IMG/VR virus record: IMGVR_UViG_3300027759_006101
Location: 1 to 64,000 of that record
Reading direction: 5' to 3' (one strand)
DNA: 64,000 nucleotides
The notes below the pieces were generated by a model, which saw only the letters and a program-made list of their open reading frames with translations, did not search any database and was not told the origin of the DNA. Within the stretch, counting starts at the first letter, position 1. Each line of letters opens with the position of its first letter. Positions 9,026-64,000 of this stretch are shown piece by piece. A program made the translations under genes and the position numbers.

Positions 9026-9703
9026 ATGTCTCCTTGGTACAAAACAGCTAAAGAATGTCTTGCTATTCGTAAAAATGTATTACGAGTTGATCTTTGTGTA
9101 TTTATTGACAAAGAAGAACAATTTACGAATAAAGATTATTTAAACTCAACAATTAAGTCTATTCTTACATCAGCAATAATTAATGGGTTGGACATTATTG
9201 GAGTGATATCTGCTGACAACCCAACTGTTGGATTGCTAGCTCAACAGATGTGTATAGAGCAAAAAATGGACTTAGTAGTAGTGCCTGGGCAAACGTATAT
9301 CACTAGAGATAATGAGTCTTTGTATGTTTACAATTTGTCAACTCCTATGCCTAAAAATCTTACCTTAGATAAAGCTTGTGAATTTGCTCACAAGAAAGGT
9401 GGATTTGTAATGGTTGCAAATGTTTCTAAACAAATTGCACAAAAAATTAATCGTTTGCAAGGAAGTCTTTATGCGCCAGATGCAGTTGAAGTATTCAATG
9501 CACAAACTGGTGGATATAGGGACATAGATATTGATTTCCCAAGATTTGTTTCTTCTGGAGCAACTTCAGCAAGTGACTTAGAAGAAACAAATGTTTTTAC
9601 TTTGTTAGAAAGAAAAAAAGCAGTAGAAATGGGATTTATTCACAATGAGCAAGGTGTAGATTATACGCCTAAATATTTACTGCCAAAAACTGGAGAAATC
9701 TAA
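9026..9703 (+). CDS. Degenerate PHP-fold protein lacking the metal ligands
   Basis: PHP motif order retained (DLCVF, GLDIIGV, VVPGQT, HKKGGFVMVAN, DAVEVFNA) but the His/Glu ligands are replaced. Confidence 0.65.
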   Translation: MSPWYKTAKECLAIRKNVLRVDLCVFIDKEEQFTNKDYLNSTIKSILTSAIINGLDIIGVISADNPTVGLLAQQMCIEQKMDLVVVPGQTYITRDNESLYVYNLSTPMPKNLTLDKACEFAHKKGGFVMVANVSKQIAQKINRLQGSLYAPDAVEVFNAQTGGYRDIDIDFPRFVSSGATSASDLEETNVFTLLERKKAVEMGFIHNEQGVDYTPKYLLPKTGEI

Positions 9704-10197
9704 TGCCAAGATCATATTGTTCAGTAAGTGATGTCAAACAGTATTTGCCGCCTAATGTTGTTACTGAAGGAGATAACCCAGTACCAAACTTTAGAAATCC
9801 TACGCCTGAATCTGCTTCGAATATCAATATTGATTTTTTTATTCAACAGGCTTCAGCAGACATTGACGCTAGTTTAGCAACAATTTATGATGTTCCTCTT
9901 AAACAAATAAATATGGGAGGAGATGTATCTTATCCTCACCCAATACCTGTTATTTGTGCAATATTATCTGCTCAAATGTATTATATGCAAGCATTACAAG
10001 GCTCAGATTCGCAATATTCGGAAGCTCAAAAAGTAAGATTTGATTTTGCACAAAATCAAATTGTAAGAATACAAAATGGAGAAATCAGGCTCTTTGGGCA
10101 GAGAAACCTTAGAGGTGATAGATTTGTCAGATCTACCTTAAGAGGAATATCAATAAATCCAACTGAAGGAAAAAGATCTAAGGGTCAAAATCAATAG
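9703..10197 (+). CDS. Head-tail adaptor, Mu gp36/DUF1320-like
   Basis: YCSVSDVKQYL...IQQASADIDASL..IYDVPL...ICAILS...AQNQIVRIQNGEIRL. Confidence 0.75.
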   Translation: MPRSYCSVSDVKQYLPPNVVTEGDNPVPNFRNPTPESASNINIDFFIQQASADIDASLATIYDVPLKQINMGGDVSYPHPIPVICAILSAQMYYMQALQGSDSQYSEAQKVRFDFAQNQIVRIQNGEIRLFGQRNLRGDRFVRSTLRGISINPTEGKRSKGQNQ

Positions 10198-10207
10198 GTG
10201 ATTATGA

Positions 10208-10984
10208 ATGCTTGAAAGAGTCTATGATACTTTGCGTGGCATTTTATATCACGAACTTCCTAAAAATGCCAAAGATCAGATTGTAATTTTTGACAGACCA
10301 GTTACAGGGTTTTACATTGGTGAGCAAGCGGTAAAACCAAACGGTATATCTTTTACATTTAAGGGTTCAAGTTCCCCGCTTAAAGATATAGCTTTTGGCC
10401 TTCAAGAATTTGAGCATTCAGTTACAATAGACATTACAGTTGGTGCAGATAATATAGAAACTACCGAAAGAGTAACCCAAGAAGCTGTAAGAATTGTTTT
10501 ATCAGTTTTACGTAAACACAGAAGAATGTGGGTTGTAGATGTTTGCCCTATATGCAAAAAATTTACATTGAACCCTCAGCATTTTACAGTTGATCATAAT
10601 GACATTTTGTCCACCTACGTAACTTCAGTAACAAGTGAATTTAATAATTTATGGACAGACACTCATGACCCAGATTTAGCTCCTCCTGCCTTACCTTCAT
10701 CAGGACTTGCAGCTGAAGCATTTATCAGAATGTATAACGATGTAGGAGCTGGCACAAGCGTATCAAACTTGACAACCACTTCAAGAAATAACATCTTAAG
10801 GATGCGAGCTGATAACGTTGAACCTGTTAGATTATTATATGATGTAATTTGCAATGACATCAAAGGTTCAGATGATGCTACAAATAGACAGCTTTTTAGA
10901 AATGGAACAATTACTATAAGAGCTAAAGAATTAGTCAGACAATTGTATTTCGGACCGGATAACGTTCCAACTACTGCATACTAG
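10208..10984 (+). CDS. Putative tail terminator/neck protein with an inserted CxxC
   Basis: Follows the adaptor; beta-rich N- and C-terminal segments (FEHSVTIDIT; FRNGTITIRA) flank an insertion starting CPIC. Confidence 0.45.
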   Translation: MLERVYDTLRGILYHELPKNAKDQIVIFDRPVTGFYIGEQAVKPNGISFTFKGSSSPLKDIAFGLQEFEHSVTIDITVGADNIETTERVTQEAVRIVLSVLRKHRRMWVVDVCPICKKFTLNPQHFTVDHNDILSTYVTSVTSEFNNLWTDTHDPDLAPPALPSSGLAAEAFIRMYNDVGAGTSVSNLTTTSRNNILRMRADNVEPVRLLYDVICNDIKGSDDATNRQLFRNGTITIRAKELVRQLYFGPDNVPTTAY

Positions 10985-22179: not shown

Positions 22180-22763
22180 AAGAATTTATCGATTTTTATA
22201 ATACAGTAAAGTCTAATTACGTGCATATCTTAGAAGTTGATCCTGTAAAATTTATAATCAAAGAAATTACTTGGAAAGATGGCTTACTAATAGATGCCAA
22301 GTCTTTTAGAAAAAAAGATAATATAGTATACCAAAATACAGAGTTTGAAAAAAGAGAAATCTTGAATATAGCTATCTTGGGTGCTTTTGATACTCAGGAT
22401 AGTAAAATGTACTATCCTGAATTTAAAAGTTCATTAATCGATTTATTAGACCACACAATTGTTGAAAAACTTTGGGTCGAGTACCAAAAACATCTTTATC
22501 TTTCTGCAGATGAAGCAAACTTTTACTACATAGCAGCTAAAAAGTATTTCAATCCTAATGATCATGAAACATATCCAGTGCCACCAATAGTAGTTGAAAT
22601 TGACTATATGCTTAGAGGCTTGGTATCATTCAGCAAAGAAGAATTTTCAAATCTTAGTATGAAAGAATTTGAAACAATGCAACTTATTTTAGCTACTAAA
22701 AATGAATCTAAGCAAAAGTCTCTTGCTGATATTGATATTGATCTAGAGAAAGAACTTAAGTAA
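22176..22763 (+). CDS. Tail assembly chaperone-like protein
   Basis: DLLDHTIVEKLW and EFSNLSMKEFE segments resemble chaperone G/T-type motifs; start moved to the ATGA overlap at 22176. Confidence 0.45.
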   Translation: MKEFIDFYNTVKSNYVHILEVDPVKFIIKEITWKDGLLIDAKSFRKKDNIVYQNTEFEKREILNIAILGAFDTQDSKMYYPEFKSSLIDLLDHTIVEKLWVEYQKHLYLSADEANFYYIAAKKYFNPNDHETYPVPPIVVEIDYMLRGLVSFSKEEFSNLSMKEFETMQLILATKNESKQKSLADIDIDLEKELK

Positions 22764-23549
22764 ATCAGAACTTTCTTCTTTACGAATTTTATCAGCCACA
22801 GGAGTTCTATCCCATTGGTGAAAAACGTAATACTCTTCATCATTAGTACTTAGTACTTTCTTGTCATTATATTTGACTTGAACATTGTTTCTCTTGATAG
22901 CTTCTCCAGTTGCGCAAAAATTATCAACGTTTGGATTTGTAATTAATACTTTTGGATTCATAGCATAATATTGAGACAAATACCCCATAACTTGTTGGTC
23001 CTGAACTAAATACTTAGCTACTCTGTTTGTATTAGAGAAAAGCATCAAACAATGATTTACAAAATGCTCAATTTTTCCAGCAAACATTCCACCACTTAGT
23101 ACTAAATTATCAAGATAAGATTCATTGTGTGATCTTAGCAATGGACGATATGAATTTTCCCACATACTATTGCAATCGTTTTCAAGAATTTTCATTCCTT
23201 CTGCAACAAGAAATAAATTGTATTGCGGTCTTGACATCATAAACTCAAATGGGTCTCTTTGAAAAATAACATCTCTCAAATCTGTATTCATAACATATTC
23301 AAATTGGTCTTGTTTGTCAGATAGCCAATCATAAAATGCCATATATCCAGTATATAAGTTTTCTTCAGTTTCAATAATATAATCAAAGTATTTTTTCAAT
23401 TTCTCAATATTGTAAGGGCTAACTGATTTTACAAAAATTGCTTTTTTGAATGACTTAAACTTTGAAATAGACTCTAAAAATAAATCACCATCTCTTGAGT
23501 CTAAGCATTTGTCTCCAAAAGAATAGTTTATAAGTAAATTTTTTTTCAT
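22743..23549 (-). CDS. GT-A-like glycosyltransferase
   Basis: TDLRDVIFQRDPF (DxxD), LSGGMFAG, DQQVMG, HQWDR; start moved to the ATGA overlap at 23549. Confidence 0.65.
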   Translation of the reverse strand: MKKNLLINYSFGDKCLDSRDGDLFLESISKFKSFKKAIFVKSVSPYNIEKLKKYFDYIIETEENLYTGYMAFYDWLSDKQDQFEYVMNTDLRDVIFQRDPFEFMMSRPQYNLFLVAEGMKILENDCNSMWENSYRPLLRSHNESYLDNLVLSGGMFAGKIEHFVNHCLMLFSNTNRVAKYLVQDQQVMGYLSQYYAMNPKVLITNPNVDNFCATGEAIKRNNVQVKYNDKKVLSTNDEEYYVFHQWDRTPVADKIRKEESSDLLKFFL

Positions 23550-28547: not shown

Positions 28548-28556
28548 AGTTTTATT

Positions 28557-29507: not shown

Positions 29508-29514
29508 TTAAAAT

Positions 29515-29538: not shown

Positions 29539-29544
29539 AAGTTT

Positions 29545-43708: not shown

Positions 43709-43789
43709 TTTATTGCTGCTTCCCTTAATAAAATCAAATCTTTTATCAAAGTGTGTTATAAAAGTATTCCTTTATAAACTGATTATTTT

Positions 43790-43816
43790 TTCTTGATAAA
43801 TAGGTTTTACACCTTT
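43790..43816 (-). promoter_or_regulatory. Putative late promoter AAAGG-N18-AGAA
   Basis: AAAGG TGTAAAACCTATTTATCA AGAA, intergenic upstream of the scaffold. Confidence 0.7.
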
Positions 43817-43823
43817 TTTATCT

Positions 43824-43853
43824 ATTTACGGGGAGATAAATCTCCCCATAAAT
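43824..43853 (-). terminator. Stem-loop after the protease gene
   Basis: GGGGAGA-4 nt-TCTCCCC with an extended AT stem; no clear U tract on the minus strand. Confidence 0.5.
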
Positions 43854-43854
43854 C

Positions 43855-47994: not shown

Positions 47995-48032
47995 ATAAAA
48001 ATTCCTTTAAAATAAAGTTTCTGATACCTGTA

Positions 48033-48059
48033 TTCTAAAAATGTACTCTTTAAACCTTT
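48033..48059 (-). promoter_or_regulatory. Putative late promoter AAAGG-N18-AGAA
   Basis: AAAGG TTTAAAGAGTACATTTTT AGAA, intergenic upstream of the protease. Confidence 0.7.
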
Positions 48060-48072
48060 GATTACTTAAAGC

Positions 48073-48098
48073 TAAACCCGTCGGTTTCGACGGGTTTA
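48073..48098. terminator. Perfect 11-bp stem-loop after the portal gene
   Basis: TAAACCCGTCG-GTTT-CGACGGGTTTA. Confidence 0.75.
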
Positions 48099-48117
48099 TT
48101 GTACAGTTTAGTTAAAA

Positions 48118-50499: not shown

Positions 50500-50506
50500 A
50501 ACATAT

Positions 50507-50513
50507 ATTATAC
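50507..50513 (-). promoter_or_regulatory. GTATAAT -10 box 7 nt before the portal ATG
   Basis: CGGTATAAT ATATGTT ATG, no SD. Confidence 0.6.
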
Positions 50514-50527
50514 CGTTCTATTTTTTA

Positions 50528-51055
50528 TTAGAACCAAGTTTGATTAGATGGAAGTTGTCCGAAGAGTTTTGGATCTTGTTTGCCACTTAATGCTTGTGTA
50601 TAACCTTCACCATTCTTTAAGTGCAAAAATCCTTCACCTTTTTTGTAAGCATTAGAATCTGCTGGACTGACATTATTGTTTTGTTGCCTTGAGCCATCTA
50701 AAAGATTTTCAAGAGTAGTTTCTTCAGGGTTGGAGTGATGTTCAGAATGTCTTCTCGCTTCATTGGATGCTGACTGTGGACCAGTAATAAATTGACCATT
50801 ATTGTCCATATTCATTCTATGAGGTCTCTTTACAAGTAACTCCCAAATTTCTGCCTGCTGCTCTTTTGTCATATGATAATAATCATCGACAGTTTTGTTC
50901 ATTTTTTTAAGAATACCAGGTAGTTCATCGTAAAGACCTTGTGGCTGATTGTCAATATCTTTAACAATGTCAATTCCGGCATTTTGCTCATTAGTAGATT
51001 CATTTCTTGAAAAATCTACTCCACCGCCAAATGATACGACTTTTCTATACCACAT
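50528..51055 (-). CDS. Hypothetical head-associated protein
   Basis: 175 aa, starts MWYRKVVS. Confidence 0.65.
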   Translation of the reverse strand: MWYRKVVSFGGGVDFSRNESTNEQNAGIDIVKDIDNQPQGLYDELPGILKKMNKTVDDYYHMTKEQQAEIWELLVKRPHRMNMDNNGQFITGPQSASNEARRHSEHHSNPEETTLENLLDGSRQQNNNVSPADSNAYKKGEGFLHLKNGEGYTQALSGKQDPKLFGQLPSNQTWF

Positions 51056-52628
51056 CGTCGTATTCTTCTCTTTTAGATTGCATTACATAATCTAAGCCGA
51101 GTTCATTTGCAAAGTTTTTAAGATCGTCTTCAGAAAATTGATGACCCCAATCATCATCATCAGTATCACTCAATAGTTGTTCGATACTTTTGTCATTTTT
51201 GTTGTTTTGTCTATGGGATTCTAATTCTTCTTCTTTTGAATCTTCGCTAACTTTCTTTGATGCAGATATATTTTTATTGAGTAAATTACTTACTGACTCT
51301 TTAGGCTCAGCTTTATTTTTATTGAGTTCATTTCTATAATTCTTTGGTTCTTTGCTATCAAGCAGTTGTTCAGCGTATGATTTCTCCATTTCGCCTTTTC
51401 TTGAATAAAGACCATCTTCGAGTTGTTCTTCTCGAGTAGTCTCAGTATCAGAATCTACATCATTGAGTTTTCTTAATAAAGCCTCAAGATAGTCACTACC
51501 GCTTTGCTCTTCTCTAGGTAATTGAGAATCTATAGTTTTCATAGAATCAGATTGAGCTTGCTTTGGTCTTAGAACAGGTTTACTACCTTGCTGATGGCCA
51601 TAACTTGACTCTTTTGTCTCAGAAAGTTGTTTTTCTCTAGAGTCTGATTCGTTATGTTTACCTCTAACTTTATTTGCGCCTCTATCAGAATTCTCAAATC
51701 TTGCTTCAAAACCAACTTCACCGTCAGTCAGTTTTTTAGATCTTTCACCTTCAGCAAGATTAAGTAAATTGGCTTCATTATCAGGATGCCTATGGACATC
51801 AAGTTTGCCCATAACTTGATCATGTGATTGGAAAGCTGTTTTCATCCAGTCAGCATATGCACAAGTCACAGTTCCATCTTTACCAATTCTTGAGTCAATG
51901 CAGTTTTCTCTACACTTAGAAATCTCCATTGGTACAGGGCCTTTACCTTGAAGTTTTCCTTTAGGGCATAAAAGATAAGGCTCATTGTCTTGTGTTGATA
52001 ATGTAGTGTATGCAACTCTTTTCATTTCAGATGGAGTTATGCTTGAAAATGTCTGTTTTACTTTTTCGGCAACTTCTGATACGGCTTCTTTGTTGCCAGA
52101 AAGAACTAAAGTTCTTGCTTTATCTAAAAATGATTTAGAAATAACATTATCAGCAAATCTATACAAATTATCTAAAGAATTAATGGACTCAATCTGCCAA
52201 TATCCAGTAGATTTGTCTTCTTTTTTGTATGCAACTCTTTCAAATTTAACAGCAGAGGATTCTTTGTTTAAAAAACTTTGAAGAGACACGTATGCATATC
52301 TTAGAAGATTTCTTTGTTGTGCTAATTTGATATTATTTAATGTTTTGTATGCGCTATGAACTTTTGATGCTGGTAAAGCAACAATAATTTCAGGTCCACC
52401 CATTGACTTAAAGCTATTTGTTATAGGATCGTCACCAAAATCATCAGCACTTAAAACATGAAAAGGAGAAGAGTGTGGAATTCTTTCTCCATCACCAACA
52501 TTTGACAAAGTATCTTGGAGCATTTGCAACAATCCCATACCGCCAATCTTGGAATTCCCCAAAATTTTCTCAACTTTGTTTGGATCGTGTGTTTCATACT
52601 TAGTAGTGATTTTGTATCCGTGTTCCAT
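51045..52628 (-). CDS. Hypothetical head-associated protein with a Cys cluster and repeated ExQL motifs
   Basis: 527 aa; LLCPKG...CRENC...C; KLAQ and RVAY x2. Confidence 0.65.
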   Translation of the reverse strand: MEHGYKITTKYETHDPNKVEKILGNSKIGGMGLLQMLQDTLSNVGDGERIPHSSPFHVLSADDFGDDPITNSFKSMGGPEIIVALPASKVHSAYKTLNNIKLAQQRNLLRYAYVSLQSFLNKESSAVKFERVAYKKEDKSTGYWQIESINSLDNLYRFADNVISKSFLDKARTLVLSGNKEAVSEVAEKVKQTFSSITPSEMKRVAYTTLSTQDNEPYLLCPKGKLQGKGPVPMEISKCRENCIDSRIGKDGTVTCAYADWMKTAFQSHDQVMGKLDVHRHPDNEANLLNLAEGERSKKLTDGEVGFEARFENSDRGANKVRGKHNESDSREKQLSETKESSYGHQQGSKPVLRPKQAQSDSMKTIDSQLPREEQSGSDYLEALLRKLNDVDSDTETTREEQLEDGLYSRKGEMEKSYAEQLLDSKEPKNYRNELNKNKAEPKESVSNLLNKNISASKKVSEDSKEEELESHRQNNKNDKSIEQLLSDTDDDDWGHQFSEDDLKNFANELGLDYVMQSKREEYDDVV

Positions 52629-52630
52629 AA

Positions 52631-53497
52631 TTAATTTCCTAACCCAAGCATTGACAATTCTTCTTTATCAAATCCTCTGTCAGTTAATGCTTTTTTGATT
52701 TCTGCCAATTCTTCTTTAGCACCCTTTTTATTTGCTGGATCCTTGAAATCACCTTGAGGAGTTGACTTACTGTAATCAAGTAAATCCATCAAGAAACAAG
52801 CTCTTAAAATTAATTCTGAAGTAGATCTTTTGTGGAAATTTGGAGATTCGTCATAATTCAAAGATGCAGTTTTGACAGCTTCTTTTTTTGAATCTTCTTT
52901 TTCGTCTTTATCGTCATCTTTTTTTAGTTTCCTGTTATAATCTTTGACGATATCTACCGCACGTTCAATTGTTTCTTTATTCCAATACTTAAGCTTGGCA
53001 ATATATCTTACAATATCGTTTTTCTCTACACCGTGATCTAGAAGTTTTCCAACCTTGCCCATCAAAACTCTGAATGGATTTCCACGAGTTTTTTTCTTTT
53101 TCTTTTGTGCTGCTCTTGAATTATTGTACACTTTGTCTTCCTTCTTAGATGTGATATAGAGTTCATATATTTCTCTACCAATATCTTGATAAGTAGGGTC
53201 CAATTCACCTGTAAGTGGGTCTTTAGTTCTAGTTCTTCCACTATTAGAATGCATTAATGCTTTAGATAATTTATCAAGTTTATGTTTAAGATTTTCATCA
53301 ACAATTCTTACGCTTACATTTGCAACTTGATCTGCCATTACTTGAAAATCGTCTTTACATGCTAATACTTCTTGCAGTAAAGTTTGCAATTCTGATTCTG
53401 TAACGCCTTCAATTTGTTCCCCTCCAAGTGGAATATTATTGATTCCATTTGCAGGATTTGATGCTAATGCCGGTCCTTCAGAATTGTTTGGTTCCAT
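52631..53497 (-). CDS. Hypothetical head-associated protein
   Basis: 288 aa; basic KKKKKTRGNPFRVLMG segment; VKTAS. Confidence 0.65.
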   Translation of the reverse strand: MEPNNSEGPALASNPANGINNIPLGGEQIEGVTESELQTLLQEVLACKDDFQVMADQVANVSVRIVDENLKHKLDKLSKALMHSNSGRTRTKDPLTGELDPTYQDIGREIYELYITSKKEDKVYNNSRAAQKKKKKTRGNPFRVLMGKVGKLLDHGVEKNDIVRYIAKLKYWNKETIERAVDIVKDYNRKLKKDDDKDEKEDSKKEAVKTASLNYDESPNFHKRSTSELILRACFLMDLLDYSKSTPQGDFKDPANKKGAKEELAEIKKALTDRGFDKEELSMLGLGN

Positions 53498-53499
53498 TT

Positions 53500-54306
53500 T
53501 TATCTTAAGTCTAAATCAATATTGTTGTAAATGTCAGAAACAGTTTGCGCTCTATTTTTAGATTTTTCTATCATTTGATCTTGAAAATTCTTTTGTATGG
53601 AGAGTCTTTCATTTCTAACACGGTCTTGGTTAGCAATACGCATACTTTCTCTTTGGTCTAAACTTTCAGGATCAATCATTCCAAATGTTGAGTTGAATTC
53701 ATTATCTGATGAAGTTCTCAAAATAGAATGAGCTCTGGAATTAACAACATTTGCTTTCTTAATTTTGTTAATGTTTTTCTCTTCCCAAGATTGATGCCTA
53801 GATGCTTTAGCTTCTCTCAATCTTTGTTGTTCTACAACTGCTTGTTCAGTTGTTGATTCTTGGGAATTCAAAAATTCTTTTGAAATTGAAATCATATCAG
53901 GATTGAAAATATTAGAAGATCCTCTGAGCATACAATCCATATATTCCTCAGATGAATATGCCTTCAAACCACTTGTTGTAGTTCTTGCACTTTCACCGTC
54001 ATCATAAAAAGAACCTGATCTCTTAATAGCAGAAAAATCTTGTGCTAAAAGTCTATCTTCTACAGTTTCTTGTCTTAAGTCATTGTAAAGAGATGGGCCG
54101 GAAATTTTTTCCCATGATTTGCTGAAAGAATTAGCTTCTTTAGTAAATCCTATGTTTTGCTTAGAAATTTTCATTCTATTTTCAGCAGAATTCATTCTCA
54201 ATTCAGCATATGGGTCTTCTTCAACTTCAACTTGAGCACCAACAAATTTTTTCTCTAAAAAACTTGGTATATTTTCAATTTCTGATACTTTTTTAAATCT
54301 ACTCAT
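53500..54306 (-). CDS. Hypothetical head-associated protein
   Basis: 268 aa, starts MSRFKKVS. Confidence 0.65.
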   Translation of the reverse strand: MSRFKKVSEIENIPSFLEKKFVGAQVEVEEDPYAELRMNSAENRMKISKQNIGFTKEANSFSKSWEKISGPSLYNDLRQETVEDRLLAQDFSAIKRSGSFYDDGESARTTTSGLKAYSSEEYMDCMLRGSSNIFNPDMISISKEFLNSQESTTEQAVVEQQRLREAKASRHQSWEEKNINKIKKANVVNSRAHSILRTSSDNEFNSTFGMIDPESLDQRESMRIANQDRVRNERLSIQKNFQDQMIEKSKNRAQTVSDIYNNIDLDLR

Positions 54307-54333
54307 TTTTTCATCCTTAATTTATTCAAGAAT

Positions 54334-54357
54334 GTCCCAAGGCCTAAACCTTGGGAC
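54334..54357. terminator. Stem-loop between 54374-55408 and 53500-54306
   Basis: GTCCCAAGG-CCTAAA-CCTTGGGAC. Confidence 0.65.
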
Positions 54358-54373
54358 TTTTCTTCTTGAGGAA

Positions 54374-55408
54374 TTAATTTTTCTTGTCGTATTTCTTGGT
54401 AAATAAGGCGTCGATCCAATCTTGGTCGCCATAGCCTAAATCATTTTTCCAATAATCAATGAGTCTTGAATAATCAGCATCAGAAAGTGTTGCTGTCTTA
54501 ATCATTGATGACGCTGCAGCAATCTTAGTACTGTGATCGAGCTTTGATGCTAAAACACTTCTGATTTTTGCTGTATTGTCAACCTTTTTAGTAGCAACTT
54601 CGCCAATTCTTGCTTGGATATACTCAACTGGGAAACCCTCTGCAAGAGCCTTTTGTGCAAAAGCTGTTTTCATAGCAGGAGTCATTCCAGAATTTTGAGT
54701 CTTTCTAGATGCAGTCTTAACTGGTTGTGGTTGAACTGATTGCTCTTCAACACTTTGAACAAGTGCTTCTCTGTAAGCTCTTCTTTGTGCTAATCTAACA
54801 GACTTTTCTTTTTCAGAAGCAATTCTTGTTTCAATTTGTGAAGCAAGTCTGATTCTTCTGTCGTGTCTAGCAGCAAGAATAGCACTCTTTAAGTGCTCAT
54901 CGCCAGCAGCTTCTGCAGCTTCAACTGCTTCTGCGGAAAGTTGTGAAGGATGGTTGAAGACATATGCTTTCTTAACTTTCTCATCTTTCTTAGGACCTTT
55001 TCTCTTCATCGGGCCCTTTGCATGATCTTCGTGATCTTCTTCTTCTTCGTCTTCGTGATCTTCGTCTTCGTGATCTTCAGATTTGTTTTTCTTGCCTTTC
55101 TTGTTCTCTTCAAGCCACTTAGCTAAGCCAGGATTAAGGCCTTTCTTAGCCATTTTGGTTGAATTGTGATACATAGATTCATCTTCCACATCTTCATTTG
55201 CGTAAGAAGAACCAGCTTCTTGTAACATATCAACCTTTTCTTTGCCAATAGAGTCTAAGAGTGCTTTAAGACCTTTATCTTTGTCTTCCTCACCATTTTC
55301 AGCAGCTGCTAATCTTTGGTTAAAGTTATCCCAGTCAATTCCTTGAAAAACAAGGTCAGAATCAAGAGGGTCTTCTTGATATCTGTTTGGGAAAATTCTA
55401 TCTGCCAT
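54374..55408 (-). CDS. Highly charged head-associated (scaffold-like) protein
   Basis: 344 aa; DHEDE repeats; RLAS, RLAQ, KTAS, KTAT; GAGGAG SD. Confidence 0.65.
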   Translation of the reverse strand: MADRIFPNRYQEDPLDSDLVFQGIDWDNFNQRLAAAENGEEDKDKGLKALLDSIGKEKVDMLQEAGSSYANEDVEDESMYHNSTKMAKKGLNPGLAKWLEENKKGKKNKSEDHEDEDHEDEEEEDHEDHAKGPMKRKGPKKDEKVKKAYVFNHPSQLSAEAVEAAEAAGDEHLKSAILAARHDRRIRLASQIETRIASEKEKSVRLAQRRAYREALVQSVEEQSVQPQPVKTASRKTQNSGMTPAMKTAFAQKALAEGFPVEYIQARIGEVATKKVDNTAKIRSVLASKLDHSTKIAAASSMIKTATLSDADYSRLIDYWKNDLGYGDQDWIDALFTKKYDKKN

Positions 55409-55448
55409 AATTTTGTTTTCTCCTCAAGAAAAAATACATTAAAAAAAC

Positions 55449-55475
55449 TTCTTAAATTTAAAGGGTAATTCCTTT
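55449..55475 (-). promoter_or_regulatory. Putative late promoter AAAGG-N18-AGAA
   Basis: AAAGG AATTACCCTTTAAATTTA AGAA. Confidence 0.7.
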
Positions 55476-55482
55476 AATGCAT

Positions 55483-55866
55483 CTATTTATTTTCTTTATC
55501 TAAAATCAGTTTGTTGCCCTTCATTATAAGCTTATCGCCTATTTTTATACCCAATTTGTCAAAAGTTCCCTTATTTGCTTCTACAACAAAAATAATCTTT
55601 GAACTTTCAGGATAAACAGATTTAGGATCATCTGCTTCCATATCTTTAATGTCTCGAATTCTGTACTTATCATCTAAAAAAGCTAATGATAATGGAAAAC
55701 TAACATTTTTATTCCAAAAAGAGTAACAGTCAGGATAATCAAACTTGAAAACGACAACTTCGAAGTTTTCTAAAGGCTCCGCAAACATTAAGCCTTTTGT
55801 TCGTAATTTGTCATTATTTGCTAAAAATCTAATTTCAAATTCATCACGGAATTTGTCTTTAGTGAG
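55483..55866 (-). CDS. DUF192-family domain whose N-terminus lies upstream of the first ATG, in frame after the UGA of the previous gene
   Basis: LTKDKFRDEFEIRFLANNDKLRTKGL-MFAEPL...FWNKNVSFPLSLAFLD...VVEANKG...IKIGD. Confidence 0.75.
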   Translation of the reverse strand, partial: LTKDKFRDEFEIRFLANNDKLRTKGLMFAEPLENFEVVVFKFDYPDCYSFWNKNVSFPLSLAFLDDKYRIRDIKDMEADDPKSVYPESSKIIFVVEANKGTFDKLGIKIGDKLIMKGNKLILDKENK

Positions 55867-56358
55867 TCAAGAACCAACTTTCTTAAATTTATTAGCAGAA
55901 GCCTTTACACTTCTTGCAGCTTCTAAATCAAATCTATCTTTAGTTCTTTGTTTTCTAAACTCATTGACATTTTCTGTTGAGAGAAAATGATCTCTAAGAG
56001 CTAATTTTGCCCTATCTGTCAGTTCTACAGATCTGCCATAGCCTGTTATTAATCCAGCTGTTTTCAATGCAAGCAAATCATTATCAGAAATATTGTTTGG
56101 AACACTGCAGACTTTTCCATCTTTGTTTAAGGCCAATTGAGACGCTGCAGTAACAAGTTCGTCAGTAGAAGCATCTATAGTCCTAAGCATATCAATATAT
56201 CTAGTGCTCAATTTAGCTGCTTCTGCCTTTTTAGGTTGTTGGGAAACTCCTAATAGTTGAATTTGGATGTCTGATAATCCAAGTCCTTCCATTGATGGGC
56301 CGTCAAATAATTCTGCGTGTAAATCTAAACTATGTACTGGTTTAATTGGTATTGGCAT
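55867..56358 (-). CDS. Hypothetical head-associated protein, possible read-through fusion to DUF192
   Basis: Start moved to ATG 56358 after an AAGGAG SD; winged-helix-like LLALKTAGLITGYGRSVELTDRAK; ends KFKKVGS-TGA. Confidence 0.7.
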   Translation of the reverse strand: MPIPIKPVHSLDLHAELFDGPSMEGLGLSDIQIQLLGVSQQPKKAEAAKLSTRYIDMLRTIDASTDELVTAASQLALNKDGKVCSVPNNISDNDLLALKTAGLITGYGRSVELTDRAKLALRDHFLSTENVNEFRKQRTKDRFDLEAARSVKASANKFKKVGS

Positions 56359-56368
56359 AATAATCTCC

Positions 56369-56809
56369 TTATCTGTTTGGTAATCTATTTTTCCAAGCAT
56401 TGCCTTCGTCTACATTTTTCTGATATGTTTCTTCCCAAGTAAAAGATAAAGTATCTCCCGCCATAGATGGGCTTGATGCTAAATTTCCTGGATCGATATA
56501 TGCTGGACCTGGAACACTATCTGGGCCGTGCAATAAGCCTTCAATGTTTGGACCATCTTGCTCTCCACCCAAATCAAAATAATCTCTAACAAATCTATTG
56601 GGTTTTATCTTTTGTCTAAAGTAGTCATTTTCTTTATATTCATCTTCAATTTCTTCATATTCAACAAAATGAACGTGTGGCACCTTAGTTACCGACTGTT
56701 GAGGATAGTATTGAGCAAATTTGTTGAATAATTTGTCAGACTGAGCGAATTTGCCTGATGAATCTAATTTTTCACAAAGGTCCAGCAAAAGTAAAATTTG
56801 TTTATTCAT
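56369..56809 (-). CDS. Hypothetical protein
   Basis: Start moved to ATG 56809, 1 nt after the upstream stop; MNKQILLLLDLCEKLDSSGKFAQSDKLFNKFAQ. Confidence 0.65.
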   Translation of the reverse strand: MNKQILLLLDLCEKLDSSGKFAQSDKLFNKFAQYYPQQSVTKVPHVHFVEYEEIEDEYKENDYFRQKIKPNRFVRDYFDLGGEQDGPNIEGLLHGPDSVPGPAYIDPGNLASSPSMAGDTLSFTWEETYQKNVDEGNAWKNRLPNR

Positions 56810-56810
56810 T

Positions 56811-57800
56811 TTAAAATGTTGGTCCCATAAATCCACTTAATAATGTGTCATATTGCTCTTCGACACTTGCATCTTCAGTTGGTGTTGGTTTTACAAAATT
56901 AAAATAAGAAGAAGGCATTTTTGGTTGACGTATATTACTTTCAATAGATTGGAATGGGTCTATTTGTTTTAATTCTGCACTTTCTTCACCAGTAAACTTT
57001 CTAGGAGTTAAATTGACATTTGCATCAGGATTTGGATAAGTCAATAAGGTGTCTTTCAATTGGTATTCTTGATAACCGTCTTGATCTGGTGTATTGACAT
57101 TTATCAAATCATCAAAGTATTGTTCTAAATCAGATCCGTGTTCTAACAATGGGGTTTTACCTAACGGTTCATTACTGATTTGTTCTACATCATATCTATT
57201 TCTTGGCTCAGCATATTCTTCAGTAATTCTATTTCTTCTTTTGATTTGATAGTCTTCTGCTACACGGTTTATGTCATTTTCTGAAATTGCAAAGTGAATT
57301 CTTGATGGTTTGTCTGGATCTTTGTATTCTTCTCCCATAAACTTATAATCTTTTTTGTATTTATGCCTGTCTTCTAAAGACTGTTCCATAGTCATAAGAT
57401 GCTCAGGTTTAGCATTAAAATTTTGTTTTATGTACTGGGGAGAGTTTTTATGTAAATCGTTAGCTGCATTTTCTAAAGACTGTTTGTAATTATGAAGTTG
57501 AGCACGAAGTTTAGCTCTCATTCTTTCTTCAGGGGTTAAATTGTATGGAATTGATTCTTCGTAATGTTTATGTTGTGGAGTAAGACGGCTTTCGATATTT
57601 GCATCTCTGCCATCAAATTCCATATGGGTTTTACGGAGCAACTTATCAAAATTTGCGTCTTCATCGACATACAAATTTATCTCATGTCCGCCTCTATTGT
57701 TACCACCCTTACCAATAGGACTTTTTCCAGGCATGAATGGAGACACTTGTCCGCCGCCACCAACGCCTCCAAATTGTGCTATACGAATATTTTCAGACAT
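56811..57800 (-). CDS. Hypothetical head-associated protein
   Basis: 329 aa, starts MSENIRIAQFGG. Confidence 0.65.
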   Translation of the reverse strand: MSENIRIAQFGGVGGGGQVSPFMPGKSPIGKGGNNRGGHEINLYVDEDANFDKLLRKTHMEFDGRDANIESRLTPQHKHYEESIPYNLTPEERMRAKLRAQLHNYKQSLENAANDLHKNSPQYIKQNFNAKPEHLMTMEQSLEDRHKYKKDYKFMGEEYKDPDKPSRIHFAISENDINRVAEDYQIKRRNRITEEYAEPRNRYDVEQISNEPLGKTPLLEHGSDLEQYFDDLINVNTPDQDGYQEYQLKDTLLTYPNPDANVNLTPRKFTGEESAELKQIDPFQSIESNIRQPKMPSSYFNFVKPTPTEDASVEEQYDTLLSGFMGPTF

Positions 57801-57809
57801 AATGATTTT

Positions 57810-57836
57810 TTCTTATTTTAAAATTTATAATCCTTT
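57810..57836 (-). promoter_or_regulatory. Putative late promoter AAAGG-N18-AGAA
   Basis: AAAGG ATTATAAATTTTAAAATA AGAA, 9 nt before ATG 57800. Confidence 0.7.
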
Positions 57837-57845
57837 ATACTTTAA

Positions 57846-59957
57846 TCATCTTCTGTTCAAATTGACCATTTTTGATTTAGGCAATCTTGCGATAATTTTA
57901 GAAGTAAGACATTCAAAAGAAACTGCGGCAACACAGTCACATATGTCGTCTTTGTAACCAGACAATGCTTCGATATAGTATCTTTTGCCTTTCCATTTTT
58001 TTTGCAAGAATAAAAACTGAGTTTTTGCTTCTTGAACTTCATTTAGTGGTTGTAGTGTATTGTGCATATCTGCGTAACTACCACCTGATAAATCATAGAC
58101 ATCAATCCTGTCATCTCTAATTAATTGAGCTAATTCTGTATAGATTTTTTCTTTATATTCTTTATTAAATTGTCTCTCTATAATTGGAACGCCATAACTT
58201 TGAAGCTTTATAACTGATGATTGTGAATTCCAGTGATCAATTGAAACTTGCTTAAATCTAAATCTACGATGTAAATCAATTACATAGTCTTCAACTTCTT
58301 TTTCTTTGACAGGTTGATTTCTTGTAAGAGGATTCCAAAAATGGATATGATCTATGACAACTCTCTTAAGAGGTGTATGGTCAGGCCCAATAGTCCCATA
58401 CATTGTCTCTGTATGAGCAATGACAAGAGCATAATAGTCAGATGTTCTCGCAGGGTCAATATGGCAAAAATATTCGAAAAGACCGTCTGGCATTTCTTTT
58501 CTTTTAACCATATTTTGACTTTTGAACATTTTATCTATATCTTCGGACATAAACATAGGGTCTGATGATGAAGCACCAAACTCAGCTCCATATTGCATTT
58601 GAAATTCTTGTGGGTCTTTTCTCTTTTGCCCATCAAGCCATTCTTTATCAATGTTTGGATTAGTAAGCCAAGTAGGAAGTCTCATCACAAGAGTTGTTGG
58701 ATCTTCCTGTCTATTTTCATGCAAGTCATATAGCAATCCAATAGGGCCTTTGGGGTTGGAAAGAAGCATCATTTTGCCATCTTTACCAAATGTAGCTAGT
58801 GATGGCTTCAAATCATCATAAAGACCGTAGTCAACGCCAGAATCTGGATTATCTCCTGCCATGGCTGCAACTTCGTCCATAATAATAGACCAACAAGTAA
58901 GACCAACAAGACCTGAAGCATTACTACTACCACATCTTAGGACTAATGATCCAGCAAAAGGATTGATTTTATCTTCTGCTCTTCTGACATTTTCTTCCCT
59001 ATCGTGTTCAGTATAAAACCTCATTTCAAGTTCAGTATCTTTACCTATATATGGAGCAAAAAATGGAGAAGCCAGAACTGTCTGTTTGATTTTTGAGAAG
59101 ATTGCTTTTTTAGCCTGTTCTTCATTTCTAGCAACGTTCAAGAGTACAATCTCATCAAATTCCATTAGTCCATATCTTGCTTGTGGATGACCCATAGATA
59201 TTAAACGATATAATTCATAAAGAGCCATAGCAGATACAAGGAACGATTTGCCAGAACGTCTCCCCAGTACTAAGACTAATTCTTCAAACTTGTATCTTTT
59301 TGTGCATTTTTCTTGAACTTGCATCCTTAGTTTTGGATCAAATTCCTCAGAATACAATAAATCGTTTTCTGTTTGAAACCCATCTATTATTGGCCTTGAT
59401 TCTAATACTTCTACCTGTCTTTCAGCATCTGGATTAGTTGCTTCTTGACGAGCATATCTATATCTTTCATCTCTTACGTTACTGTCAAGCCTAGAACACT
59501 GTAAACAAGGCGAATTTACAACGTTAAAAATAGTTTTAAATTGCTTTTCTTGTTCTCTAGCTTTAAAGAAAGCAGTTTCATTTTTATGGACATAATTCCA
59601 TACGCAACCATTACATCCAGAATCTGATTTATCATCTAAAATTGTAAGACTGGTATTTCCTTCCTGACCCATATAAAAACATTTCAAAATTAATTTTTGC
59701 CAAGGATAAGGCCTTAAATTACAAAAATACGGATGCTCAATAAATGTAATAATGTCTACAATTTGGTCAGGATTGAATCTATCTTTTGCAGGTTTGGCAG
59801 GAGGTGCAACTTCTTGTCTTCTTGCTGGAACAATTTCATCAGCAAAATCATTTGCATATTCAGTATCTTTGAAAAGTTCAGTTACAGAATTGGCTTGTTG
59901 TAGAAGCTGACTTCTAAGTTCATTGGAAGACTTGACTACAGGAGTTGGTTTTCTCAT
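57846..59957 (-). CDS. terL: Terminase large subunit
   Basis: Walker A LGRRSGKS, Walker B IIMDE, LSNP coupling motif, FQMQYGAEF, nuclease HIDPA and KDDICD. Confidence 0.95.
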   Translation of the reverse strand: MRKPTPVVKSSNELRSQLLQQANSVTELFKDTEYANDFADEIVPARRQEVAPPAKPAKDRFNPDQIVDIITFIEHPYFCNLRPYPWQKLILKCFYMGQEGNTSLTILDDKSDSGCNGCVWNYVHKNETAFFKAREQEKQFKTIFNVVNSPCLQCSRLDSNVRDERYRYARQEATNPDAERQVEVLESRPIIDGFQTENDLLYSEEFDPKLRMQVQEKCTKRYKFEELVLVLGRRSGKSFLVSAMALYELYRLISMGHPQARYGLMEFDEIVLLNVARNEEQAKKAIFSKIKQTVLASPFFAPYIGKDTELEMRFYTEHDREENVRRAEDKINPFAGSLVLRCGSSNASGLVGLTCWSIIMDEVAAMAGDNPDSGVDYGLYDDLKPSLATFGKDGKMMLLSNPKGPIGLLYDLHENRQEDPTTLVMRLPTWLTNPNIDKEWLDGQKRKDPQEFQMQYGAEFGASSSDPMFMSEDIDKMFKSQNMVKRKEMPDGLFEYFCHIDPARTSDYYALVIAHTETMYGTIGPDHTPLKRVVIDHIHFWNPLTRNQPVKEKEVEDYVIDLHRRFRFKQVSIDHWNSQSSVIKLQSYGVPIIERQFNKEYKEKIYTELAQLIRDDRIDVYDLSGGSYADMHNTLQPLNEVQEAKTQFLFLQKKWKGKRYYIEALSGYKDDICDCVAAVSFECLTSKIIARLPKSKMVNLNRR

Positions 59958-60637: not shown

Positions 60638-60643
60638 TTACTC

Positions 60644-60650
60644 ATTATAC
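60644..60650 (-). promoter_or_regulatory. GTATAAT -10 box 6 nt before the TerS-candidate ATG
   Basis: TTGTATAAT GAGTAA ATG. Confidence 0.55.
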
Positions 60651-60652
60651 AA

Positions 60653-60686
60653 AATAAACAAGCCGCATATTTGCGGCTTGTTTATT
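60653..60686. terminator. Rho-independent terminator, 15-bp perfect stem
   Basis: AATAAACAAGCCGCA-TATT-TGCGGCTTGTTTATT. Confidence 0.85.
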
Positions 60687-60701
60687 AATTTCAAGATATA
60701 A

Positions 60702-61415: not shown

Positions 61416-61469
61416 TATCTTTCCCCTAAGATTTTTTTTTGAATTCCACTAAAAAGGACTTAAATAAAT

Positions 61470-61507
61470 AAAACCTCTAGACGTACTTTTAATGTCTCAG
61501 AGGTTTT
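61470..61507. other. Interrupted stem-loop in the divergent intergenic region
   Basis: AAAACCTCT AGAC-N11-GTCT C AGAGGTTTT. Confidence 0.55.
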
Positions 61508-61552
61508 TGTGGAACATATTTATATAATACGAGAATTTCAAAAATATATTCC

Positions 61553-61579
61553 AAAGGTTAAGATAGTAGATTTGTAAAA
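61553..61579 (+). promoter_or_regulatory. Near-match late promoter AAAGG-N18-AAAA
   Basis: One mismatch to the motif, 10 nt before ATG 61590. Confidence 0.4.
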
Positions 61580-61589
61580 TAAGAAATGT

Positions 61590-64000
61590 ATGTGGTACTC
61601 AAGAATTATCGAATCTGCAACAGCGTGGGACGTTTTATCTACTAAAGAAGTAACTTGGGCTGGATCCTTCTCCAGAACATTCAAAGATTTTTCATTTTAC
61701 GATGCAAATGAAATGCCAACAATGACTGCTTTGCTAAAACTCATAGGAGAAGTTGAAAAAGGCAAGGGCAATGATTCAATACTAGAAAAATATTTTGAAA
61801 AAGCAAAAGTCGATATTAATGCTTTATCAGATATTTCTATATTTTGTCATAGTATGTCAAAATTTATTGATAGTGAGATGAAAAAACAAGGAAGTTCTGC
61901 AAATACAGATATGATGAAAGTTTTAGACTTTCTTGGAAAACTTAATGAATTTATTAGGTCGCAAGGCCAAGAAGGTTTGGAATTAGGTCAAAAAATTACA
62001 GACTATAATAGTCTGAAGTATTCTGTAAATAGTACATTAGGTATGGGCTACACCACACTTAACTTACTTTTACGAAAAGGCACAAATCTAAATGAATCTT
62101 TAGCTATGTTTGTTTTACGTGGAGATGATATCACGAGATTAGGATATCCATCAAGCGAACAGAGAGATTTGCTCCTTGATCAAATTATAGAGGCTAAACC
62201 AGAATTACAATATTTTCAAGATCATACAAGTGTAATCAACTTAATCAGACGTGGTGAAGGAAATTTTTACTTACCGCAAATAGAAGAATATATTTATTCA
62301 GGAATTGATGAAAGCAAAGTTTTAGAAGTTCTTTTTAAATTATTGTTACATGGTACTCCACAAGATAAAGTTGCATCATTATTATCTTTACTTCCTAACA
62401 AATATAGACTAGCAGTTGCAATAAAAATAGATGAGTACAAAGATTTTGAAAACTTCTCTAAAATTATGGCTTCTAAACTGTATTCAAGCATATCTGAACA
62501 TGATTTCAATAGTGAAACTTCTTTTCTTGCAAAATTAAAATCTTTCAAAACTTTTCTTGAACTAATTTACAGTAAAGGAGACGAATGTACTCCGCTTTTC
62601 ATACAAATGGGGCTTGCAAAACCTGAAGTTATAATTAGATATTTAGAAAAAAATCCAGAAGACTTTGAAAAATTTTCTGAGGATATTTTAGATAGTCTTG
62701 GTGCTGAAGTTAAAAATAAAGTTGTTAAAAATGGTGTTCAAGCAAAAACAAGAATACAAAATGATGGTTTTGCTGCTTTAGAAAAAGCACAATCAGAAAA
62801 AGTTATTGAAGTTAAAAAAGCAACTGAAACTTCCCTTAACTGGGCATATGGTAAAAATCCAAATAAAGTGACTGCTCCTAATGGTATGTCTGAAAGTGAG
62901 CTCAGACAGAAACAAAAAACAGATGAAGTTTTCGATAAATTTATGATTTCTTACGAAGACCGTATGAAGCAAGAATCACCTTTTGCTGGTGTCAGTGAAG
63001 AAAACATTGAAAAATATTCTGATCAAATGGTCATTATAGAGTTTAGCACTTGGGCTCTCAAAGATTTTATGAGAAGGAATAATATTCCTAAGTTGAAATT
63101 AGGTCCAGTTGATTTCACCGAAGAAAAATGGGGAGGATTATTTGTACCAAGATTTCCAACAAAGGATAGAGGTCCTGTTCCTGCAATCATTATCAAAACA
63201 GATATATGGCAACAATTAGCATATCACAAAGCATTAGCAGAAAATATAGGTATGGATGCTCAGCATTATCTTGAAGCAACAAAAAGACACGAAGTTGCTC
63301 ACGCCTTACAATATCTTCAGTCTGGTGATTTTTCATTGCAAGATTCTGTTGAATTAAATCCAGAATTAACTCCAGAAGAAGCATATATTGCAAACCCGTC
63401 AGAACTTTATGCAAGAGTTCACGGAGATATTCCTTATCTCTCTAAAATATTTGATGCTCATATTGGTAAATTAATGTCAGATCCAAAGATATATCAAGCA
63501 GCCAAAGAACAATGGATACTTGATATTCAAGACGAAATGGTTCACTTAATGTCTGGTGGCACTAACGCCAAAAGATTACTTGAGGATATGGAAACTGGCA
63601 GATTTGGTAGTTACACAACATCTACTGGTCAAACAATAAAATTATCAGATCCTCTTGAAGCAATTAATAAAATGTTGCAACGTCAAAGGAATAGATTAGA
63701 AATGATCTTCCATGAGACATTCCAAATTCAAGGAAGAAGAGATTATAGAAGAGGTTTAATAGGTAAAAAAAATCAACTTGCTAGACAAATTGAATCTTCT
63801 CCAATTGATAGTCCTGAAAGAACAAAATTAGAAAAAGAATTAAAAGAAGTGCAATCAAAATTAGTTGAATCTGGAAAAATGTTAATCTTTGACGTAAAGG
63901 ATGTTACTGAAGGAGTGATCGAAGGATACCTAGCAGATTACTTTGGTAAAATTGCAAAGGCCGTAGCAGATGGTTTGCTCACTACTGATGTTGTAAATCC
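61590..64000 (+). CDS. Partial (runs off the right edge) large protein with a zincin HExxH metallopeptidase motif, >=803 aa, absent from the ORF track
   Basis: Manual translation MWYSRIIESATAW... open to 64000; EATKRHEVAHALQY (HEVAH at 63288-63302) then NPSELYAR. Confidence 0.8.
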   Translation, partial: MWYSRIIESATAWDVLSTKEVTWAGSFSRTFKDFSFYDANEMPTMTALLKLIGEVEKGKGNDSILEKYFEKAKVDINALSDISIFCHSMSKFIDSEMKKQGSSANTDMMKVLDFLGKLNEFIRSQGQEGLELGQKITDYNSLKYSVNSTLGMGYTTLNLLLRKGTNLNESLAMFVLRGDDITRLGYPSSEQRDLLLDQIIEAKPELQYFQDHTSVINLIRRGEGNFYLPQIEEYIYSGIDESKVLEVLFKLLLHGTPQDKVASLLSLLPNKYRLAVAIKIDEYKDFENFSKIMASKLYSSISEHDFNSETSFLAKLKSFKTFLELIYSKGDECTPLFIQMGLAKPEVIIRYLEKNPEDFEKFSEDILDSLGAEVKNKVVKNGVQAKTRIQNDGFAALEKAQSEKVIEVKKATETSLNWAYGKNPNKVTAPNGMSESELRQKQKTDEVFDKFMISYEDRMKQESPFAGVSEENIEKYSDQMVIIEFSTWALKDFMRRNNIPKLKLGPVDFTEEKWGGLFVPRFPTKDRGPVPAIIIKTDIWQQLAYHKALAENIGMDAQHYLEATKRHEVAHALQYLQSGDFSLQDSVELNPELTPEEAYIANPSELYARVHGDIPYLSKIFDAHIGKLMSDPKIYQAAKEQWILDIQDEMVHLMSGGTNAKRLLEDMETGRFGSYTTSTGQTIKLSDPLEAINKMLQRQRNRLEMIFHETFQIQGRRDYRRGLIGKKNQLARQIESSPIDSPERTKLEKELKEVQSKLVESGKMLIFDVKDVTEGVIEGYLADYFGKIAKAVADGLLTTDVVN

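Follow-up and report, generated by a model that had tools for sequence, protein, structure and literature searches.

Why should proteins that have nothing else in common begin or end with the same few residues? The question is raised by the first 64,000 nucleotides of the virus contig IMGVR_UViG_3300027759_006101 from IMG/VR (hereafter the window, i.e. the whole stretch of DNA that was analysed), in which a short aromatic-basic peptide, in its strict form M-W-Y-[RK], recurs at the termini of proteins encoded by several open reading frames (ORFs). The original prediction had listed seven such termini and, by analogy with the capsid-targeting sequence (CTS) of phage T4, had read them as a packaging signal. 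All seven are present in the sequence exactly as claimed. The window is part of a single virus contig of 358,269 bp with a G+C content of 33.7%, an estimated completeness of 89% (CheckV) and 402 genes in a crude ORF call on the whole contig. Its major capsid protein shares 47.5% identity with gp27 of Bacillus (Lysinibacillus) phage G and has more distant relatives in an uncultured 485-kb phage, in Tunturiibacter phage Tunturi_5 and in cluster-C-type actinophages. The contig hence represents an uncultured jumbo phage similar to phage G. Related stretches in IMG/VR number at least 156; among them are complete genomes of 350–490 kb, and near-identical contigs occur there as well (e.g. 3300027974).

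With both strands counted, the 358-kb genome contains the nucleotide string ATGTGGTAY, which encodes M-W-Y, at 17 sites. At 15 of them it provides the first possible start codon of an ORF of 74–914 amino acid residues; one of the remaining two starts a 29-aa ORF and the other looks random. M-W-Y was not found inside any called protein of the whole genome, and no ATGTGGTAY lies in frame within a called gene. With the protein at 9026, which begins with MSPWYK, the 15 M-W-Y proteins amount to 16 WY-tagged proteins. When all tripeptides in residues 2–10 were compared with the rest of the proteome, without presetting the motif, WYR headed the N-terminal ranking (10 observed vs 0.07 expected, p ~3e-19); no C-terminal tripeptide approached this enrichment in the same unbiased genome-wide scan. 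A genome-wide scan of N-termini had been proposed along with the original prediction, and the WY class exceeds chance by far. The statement of that prediction that the carriers are otherwise unrelated was upheld, as blastp comparisons between carriers from which the first eight residues had been removed gave zero matches at E<0.01. The grouping into one tag class also applies beyond the window, to the rest of the genome, its relatives and phage G. Overall, ~16–20 proteins per genome are tagged, corresponding to 4–5% of the genes.

Some 47 tags pooled from this genome and three relatives define the consensus W-Y, followed by R (23) or K (13), a variable residue, A (27, otherwise I, L, S or V) and K (12) or Q (11). 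The tag is 6–7 residues long and starts nearly always at residue 2; in the pooled alignment, conservation ends after residue 6–7. Residues 9–40 of the tagged proteins are less hydrophobic than those of other proteins (p=0.001 in the genome of the window, p=0.0005 in phage G), and many carriers have a glycine-, proline- or acid-rich stretch ahead of the first domain. Synonymous codons within the tag differ (TAT and TAC for Tyr; AGA, AGG and CGA for Arg; all four codons for Ala), and the DNA upstream of the tagged genes is not conserved and differs from gene to gene. Selection hence acts on the peptide and not on the DNA: the element is a position-specific terminal tag on unrelated proteins, selected at the protein level.

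In the window, three N-termini carry the WY tag. The 225-aa protein encoded at 9026–9703 (+) begins with MSPWYKTAK (9026–9052), the motif being offset by two residues, and its orthologue in the complete relative G001 retains W-Y. The 175-aa head-module protein encoded at 50528–51055 (-), directly upstream of the portal gene, begins with MWYRKVV (51035–51055); in the alignment of its 15 orthologues (25–63% identity), only six columns are invariant, M1, W2 and Y3 among them, and all 15 have R or K as residue 4. The third, MWYSRIIES (61590–61616, +), opens a 914-aa protein whose gene (61590–64334) extends beyond the window, and a distant 915-aa homologue in G001 also begins with M-W-Y. Most tagged genes of the window, including those with looser variants, lie inside the head module (40446–59957, -, in a block of ~40.4–61.4 kb), which was recognized by PHROG matches. 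The N-terminus MYRVAK (47977–47994, -) of a 1379-aa prohead protease fusion is tag-like and weak on its own; it is conserved in the protease orthologues (~25), which keep M-[YKL]-[RK]-x-A-K-G-G at this end. MSRFKKVS (54283–54306, -) starts a 268-aa head-module protein (53500–54306) and is conserved as [SKN]-F-[KR]-[KR]-V-[SQ] in orthologues of 50–88% identity and as I-R-K-V-S in the relative G006. At the opposite end, the head-module protein encoded at 55867–56400 (-; 163–177 aa, likely true start 56358) terminates in NKFKKVGS and the stop codon (55867–55893). Of its 9 orthologues, 8 retain [KR]-F-[KR]-[KR]-V at this end, and in G006 the motif is internal, ahead of an extension. The 220-aa protein encoded at 2029–2691 (-) terminates in QRFKKV and the stop codon (2029–2049); the only close relative found, 45% identical, likewise ends with K-R-F-K-K-V, and the homologous region of G001 is without this C-terminus. 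An eighth terminus was absent from the earlier list: the 329-aa protein encoded just downstream of the terminase gene begins with the tag-like MSENIRIAQFGG (57765–57800, -), in which [IL]-[RK]-x-A-Q precedes a glycine run; its orthologues have I-[RK]-[IT]-A-Q-F-G-G, and that of G006 has K-R-I-A-Q-F-G-G.

As a terminal class enriched throughout the genome, F-K-K-V did not hold up, with 5 matches at each end against 1.9 expected; the value for KKV at C-termini (p=3.5e-4) is uncorrected for thousands of tests. Since the three F-K-K-V cases in the window are nonetheless all conserved in orthologues of 45–70% identity, this class rests on conservation. AlphaFold models of two of the proteins were of low confidence, too low for a search by fold. 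The 177-aa protein (mean predicted local distance difference test, pLDDT, 63) was modelled as a small helix-strand-strand-helix unit with a disordered C-terminal tail of low pLDDT, and the 268-aa protein (pLDDT 56) as long helices with a disordered N-terminus.

The tag is retained across relatives of different base composition. G001 (complete, 40.6% G+C, capsid protein 90% identical) and G006 (IMGVR_UViG_3300029922_000001, complete, capsid protein 72% identical) each encode ~10 proteins with WY-[RK]-x-A. In G008 (complete, 49% G+C, capsid protein 60% identical) the tags have the form M-x-W-Y-[RKQ], with one extra residue after Met. A tagged ADP-ribosyltransferase (ART) begins with M-W-Y-K-L-A-Q in the genome of the window and its orthologue in G001 with M-P-F-F-R-R-I-S, so that two motif types interchange within one protein family. 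Five back-to-back genes of 386, 259, 74, 213 and 232 aa at 225735–229228 (-; locus L009, 1735–5228) all begin with M-W-Y-[RK]. No homologue of any of the five was detected in G001, G006, G008 or phage G, and G008 has a tandem five-gene tagged cluster of its own at 225434–228865. The cluster at 225735–229228 appears to turn over fast, in the manner of the variable internal-protein genes of T4. A second N-terminal tag, M-[RW]-Y-T-x-x-M, occurs in G006 on at least 20 small proteins between ~241 and 437 kb (loci L171–L180), with RYT observed 14 times vs 0.44 expected and WYT 9 times vs 0.31. It was not seen in the genome of the window and may mark a second sorting class.

What the carriers have in the way of domains was taken from family scans. 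Outside the window, WY tags precede a NUDIX hydrolase at 137894 (Pfam domain from residue 9), an ART-PolyVal ADP-ribosyltransferase at 139862 (domain from residue 61) and a PcfJ-like protein at 72846; the remaining WY carriers gave no family match. Among the tagged proteins of the window, the protease domain was the sole match in Pfam and PHROG scans. This confirms one of the three carriers that had been named in the original prediction, as the domain affiliates with the head maturation proteases of phrog_18299 (E=3.7e-20). The second, a 'dead PHP' protein at 9026, is PHP-like by language-model features only (score 0.94), and the third, a metalloprotease, found no support in Pfam/PHROG scans, PDB sequence search or atlas features. 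PDB sequence searches with the 9026 and 61590 proteins gave no match; the language-model atlas features of the latter match the LPD23 cluster (0.84), which is a lead only.

Two further occurrences stand apart from these carriers. The 29-aa ORF at 118970–119056 (-; locus L003, 14970–15056) begins with M-W-Y-S-R-I-K, has the same first 17 nucleotides as the 61590 gene and stops exactly where a 155-aa gene (118503–118970) starts in another frame. Possible explanations are a tagged gene that has been frameshifted or split and an error in sequencing. The C-terminus E-W-Y-K-K-V-Y-K of an epimerase (33861–34826, +) is probably a chance look-alike and a false positive for motif scans, W-Y near the C-terminus being presumably typical of this enzyme family.

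Phage G has a terminal motif of its own. ATGTGGTAY occurs there at 5 sites, which equals the control count, and the same unbiased tripeptide scan ranked KRL first (19 observed vs 1.2 expected, p ~4e-17). About 24 phage G proteins have M-K-R-L-x-K-K-[AS] at the start or S-R-L-K-K near it, and for 9 of the 24 the gene lies near the head genes, within the first 40 kb (p=6e-5). Among the carriers are gp334 (NUDIX), a PARP-like ART, a GNAT protein and the ferritin-like DNA-binding protein gp346, which is reported as part of the phage G particle proteome (PMC12484599). Two enzyme types are tagged in both phages, with gp334 and the PARP-like ART in phage G corresponding to NUDIX and ART-PolyVal in the genome of the window. 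The two versions have a core in common that consists of two hydrophobic residues, one or two basic residues and then Ala or Ser. S-R-F-K-K-V-S of the window resembles the phage G version, and the two versions are likely equivalent. Two phage G proteins, encoded at 4706–5851 (gp5) and 81739–82587 of NC_023719.1, have an R-L-K-K-type motif at both ends. The start of phage G gp10, S-R-L-K-K-V-S-F-D-G-G-G-G, recalls M-W-Y-R-K-V-V-S-F-G-G-G in the window; this was set aside as resemblance only, since profiles found no orthology.

What could such a tag be for? The explanation that we favour, and to which we give about an even chance, is that the tag and its looser relatives of the type (hydrophobic)-[RK]-[RK/x]-[V/A], e.g. 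S-R-F-K-K-V-S, form a lineage-specific short linear sorting signal of phage-G-like jumbo phages which, similar to the T4 CTS, would direct proteins into the capsid (prohead) as a flexibly tethered hook. In T4, divergent internal proteins are steered into the prohead core by short N-terminal propeptides, which gp21 then removes; the packaged ADP-ribosyltransferase Alt has a propeptide of 7 residues and gp21 itself a candidate N-terminal propeptide (PMC9026906). The internal-protein genes are poorly conserved among phages related to T4, and the CTS-like leaders persist (PMC9026906). In the phage studied here, an aromatic-basic hook of 5–7 residues would occupy a free terminus, in many cases ahead of a tether that is rich in glycine or polar, and would dock on an internal component of the prohead. 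Candidates for this component are the scaffold or core, the fusion of protease and scaffold, and the HK97-fold shell on its inner side. By this hook, the head-module proteins of 175, 268, 329 and 177 aa and the protease fusion would be built into the prohead. Diverse, fast-evolving effectors (the ADP-ribosyltransferase, the NUDIX, PcfJ-like and PHP-like proteins, and many proteins that match no family) would be loaded likewise and leave with the DNA into the host, and the prohead protease may cut the hook at the conserved A-[KQ], as in T4.

The link to the head comes from the prohead protease, which must enter the prohead and has a conserved tag-like N-terminus. Four further head-module proteins have conserved terminal motifs, and with looser variants counted 6 of 20 tagged termini fall in the 21-kb head block, where 1.2 are expected (p=8e-4). 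The domains of the carriers (ART, NUDIX, polyvalent-protein domains) are of types known or predicted to be packaged or injected, which by analogy points the same way; polyvalent-protein domains have been predicted to be capsid-delivered effectors (Iyer et al. 2017, PMC5512222), and in Tunturi_5 a NUDIX domain is found within a 1362-aa protein of the structural module. The head as the destination, a receptor, cleavage and ejection into the host are inferred. With regard to the original prediction, the proposed single tag class stood, and the packaging that it derived from T4 is an inference that fits all indirect lines tested. As for the KxA cleavage motif that it saw merged with the tag, the sequences yield the consensus WY-[RK]-x-A-[KQ], which may be a site of cleavage. 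Several observations weigh against capsid targeting. Taken by themselves, the strict WY tags show no enrichment in the head block (2 of 16, p=0.24), and most WY genes are scattered. Profile searches against all phage G ORFs found no orthologues of 11 head-module proteins, so that the claim of one signal in both phages rests on motif resemblance and the common carrier types. The only proteomic hint is gp346, and the particle proteome in question detects 104 of 668 phage G proteins, including replication enzymes. No obvious shared tag was seen on 26 head-region proteins of Tunturi_5, a more distant relative. Lastly, the phage of the window encodes ClpP and a ClpX-like ATPase, which keeps a degradation tag alive as an explanation here. 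Co-folding of the capsid protein with residues 1–40 of the 175-aa tagged protein returned no answer (score 0.00) and speaks neither for nor against binding.

Degradation is the main rival to capsid targeting and has to be taken seriously, improbable as we consider it. The terminal peptide would be read by an AAA+ protease (ClpXP of phage or host, or a ClpS-type N-degron pathway after removal of Met) and would limit the lifetime of its carriers. Degrons, too, are short, terminal, found at either end and attached to unrelated proteins. The N-terminal signal classes of ClpX are hydrophobic-basic, W and Y are N-degron residues, and the C-terminal signal R-R-K-K-A-I of MuA resembles, as we take it, the C-terminal R-F-K-K-V. 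The genome encodes ClpP at 206392–206925 (-; E=3.9e-68) and, at 286298–287350 (-), a ClpX-like ATPase without the N-terminal part of the ClpX model; phage G likewise encodes ClpP and ClpX (PMC12484599). However, neither ClpP nor ClpX was matched in the complete relatives G004, G006, G007 and G008, of which G006 and G008 use the tag, and G001 has a ClpX-like gene and no ClpP. Tag use is independent of phage clpP/clpX; a host protease may still read the tag. Furthermore, conserved head-module proteins carry the tag, as does the prohead protease, which must last until assembly; W-Y is near-invariant whereas known degrons are degenerate; and Met is normally retained before W or K. A docking motif for some other common partner (a hub protein of phage or host such as a chaperone, RNA polymerase, the ribosome or a modifying enzyme), or a label for a different compartment or for export, is unlikely. 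The data by themselves prove no more than that many unrelated proteins share a conserved short linear motif. The majority of the WY genes lie outside the head module, and the second tag of G006, M-[RW]-Y-T-x-x-M, may point to a further destination. On the other hand, such a partner would leave aside that the motif is present and conserved on the prohead protease and on four further head-module proteins, and that the carrier domains are of the injected-effector type. Sec or Tat export is contradicted by the residues after the tag, which are polar, acidic or glycine-rich and form no hydrophobic h-region, and phage-G-like phages have no known chimallin-type nucleus (PMC13282480), which counts against another destination.

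The remaining explanations dispense with targeting altogether. That [RK]-x-A-[KQ] is a prohead protease cleavage site alone, with W-Y as a specificity determinant of the protease, seems quite improbable. It would account for the A-[KQ] at the end of the consensus and for head-module proteins of several genomes in which an N-terminal [RK]-x-A-[KQ] is followed by glycine runs, and in T4 the propeptides end with the gp21 cleavage site (PMC9026906). Yet the removal of 5–6 residues would lack an obvious purpose unless the peptide had acted before, the C-terminal copies (2029 and 55867) stay unexplained, and cytoplasmic enzymes such as NUDIX would meet a prohead-confined protease only if targeted there. 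Moreover, [RK]-x-A-[KQ] without WY is weakly enriched at N-termini (8 vs 3.8 expected, p=0.04). Conservation at the nucleic acid level, as a translation-initiation or regulatory element at the start codon or as a recombination site, is largely refuted, and so are chance and hidden paralogy. About 7 ATGTGGTAY sites are expected from an estimate based on composition alone, the A-rich stretch GAATAAAA lies just upstream of a few tagged genes, and an AAGG-type upstream element, a pattern picked by eye, precedes 4 of 11 tagged genes vs 12 of 178. Against these stand the synonymous codons, which differ at Y, R, K and A, the differing upstream sequences, the coincidence of 15 of 17 ATGTGGTAY sites with exact ORF starts and the lack of mutual similarity between carriers. 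G008, in addition, retains the peptide at 49% G+C with a residue inserted after Met.

If capsid targeting is the function, the kind of signal is already known. In encapsulins, for which ferritin-like proteins are a classical cargo, short terminal peptides on a flexible linker load the HK97-fold shell, and the prohead protease of HK97 is targeted in a similar way by its C-terminal tail. The resemblance to the CTS of T4 (IPI, IPII, IPIII, Alt and gp21) lies in one short N-terminal peptide on unrelated, fast-evolving proteins with an ART among them, in a prohead protease with a tag-like N-terminus and in a motif that ends at a small conserved and possibly cleavable position. In contrast, the tag described here is aromatic-basic (W-Y-R/K-x-A) with 6–7 residues, while the T4 CTS has 10–19 residues ending in a protease site; carriers are far more numerous (~16–20 per genome), look-alike copies occur at C-termini, and the capsid protein is a small HK97-type protein, not of the gp23 type. 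By sequence and lineage the tag falls outside the family of T4 CTSs, but may well act as one. Encapsulin cargo peptides are similar in being terminal, at either end and on unrelated cargo, and a ferritin-like protein is tagged in phage G; the tag has, as far as we are aware, no resemblance to G-S-L-type peptides. The carriers also recall polyvalent proteins, which combine ART-PolyVal, NUDIX, peptidase-like and large polyvalent-protein-associated domains and are predicted to be delivered with the DNA (PMC5512222). There, the domains reside in one giant polypeptide or in MuF/portal fusions, whereas here they are encoded by separate genes, each with its own 6-residue tag. Signals for ClpX and N-degrons are equally terminal, very short and hydrophobic-basic, at either end of unrelated proteins, but the motif in the window is sharper, sits on conserved head-assembly proteins and is used by relatives without phage clpP/clpX. 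Signal peptides of the Sec, Tat or lipoprotein type differ by an h-region of ~10–15 residues after a basic n-region, which the tagged proteins lack, and microcompartment encapsulation peptides by an amphipathic helix of ~18 residues, while conservation of the tag ends at residue 6–7.

The tag strings were not described in the literature searched, and the 2025 phage G multi-omics paper (PMC12484599) and the 2026 jumbo-phage review (PMC13282480) make no mention of a targeting signal or N-terminal motif for this group. Provided that the function is as proposed, the novelty would lie in the sequence itself, in the lineage of the phage, in how many proteins carry the tag, in versions that differ between lineages and in the apparent use at either end of a protein. 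Loading into the head would make the tag a marker of the injected-protein arsenal of a large, mostly uncultured jumbo-phage clade. In each genome, ~20 mostly 'hypothetical' proteins would be labelled as virion cargo by their sequence, yielding a short list of candidate effectors for host takeover or anti-defence. Phage G is cultivable and has its own version of the tag, which makes the idea directly testable. A 6-residue tag able to load arbitrary proteins into a very large capsid would also be useful for packaging and delivery, as the T4 CTS was. Should the destination not be the capsid, a sharp terminal motif on 4–5% of the proteome would still reflect a sorting or turnover system worth solving. 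A bolder and doubtful extension is that phage-G-like mega- and jumbo phages use a proteome-wide 'postcode', in which the prohead shell or scaffold would read a 6-residue peptide and load 4–5% of the proteins for delivery to the host, with lineage-specific versions and, in G006, a second orthogonal tag to another destination. This would be the largest known tag-sorted set of virion cargo and would connect phage capsids mechanistically with the way in which encapsulins load their cargo.

The head module itself is encoded on the minus strand. PHROG matches identify the large terminase (57846–59957), the portal (48118–50499) and the HK97-type major capsid protein (40446–41300, 284 aa), which affiliates with phrog_2522 (phage G/mycobacteriophage HK97 type) and has no delta domain; 42020–43708 and 41333–41986 encode a putative scaffold of 562 aa and a putative decoration protein, respectively. 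In the protease fusion (43855–47994), the prohead protease domain (residues 52–242) is joined to ~1100 further residues, of which residues 615–727 match a portion of a second protein (143701–145011) with 35% identity. Its orthologues span 833–1890 aa, and the phage G protease is a separate protein of 300 aa.

The element AAGG[ATC][AT]T[AT], located 20–100 nt upstream of tagged genes (p=0.008) and of head genes, was not counted as evidence, because the pattern had been chosen by eye from those same genes and its statistics are circular. In the window it occurs in 43709–43854, 47995–48117, 54307–54373, 55409–55482, 57801–57845, 60638–60701 and 61416–61589, and may be a shared (late?) promoter element of head-module and tagged genes.

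Between the tail-fibre region and the head module, ~17.7 kb (22743–40395) are occupied by genes for nucleotide-sugar and polysaccharide biosynthesis, an unusually large pathway for a phage. The block encodes several NAD-dependent epimerases/dehydratases, a GDP-mannose-dehydratase-like protein, a thiamine-pyrophosphate enzyme and a dehydroquinate-synthase-like cyclase, together with a short-chain dehydrogenase, a glycosyltransferase, a DegT-type aminotransferase and a PfkB kinase.

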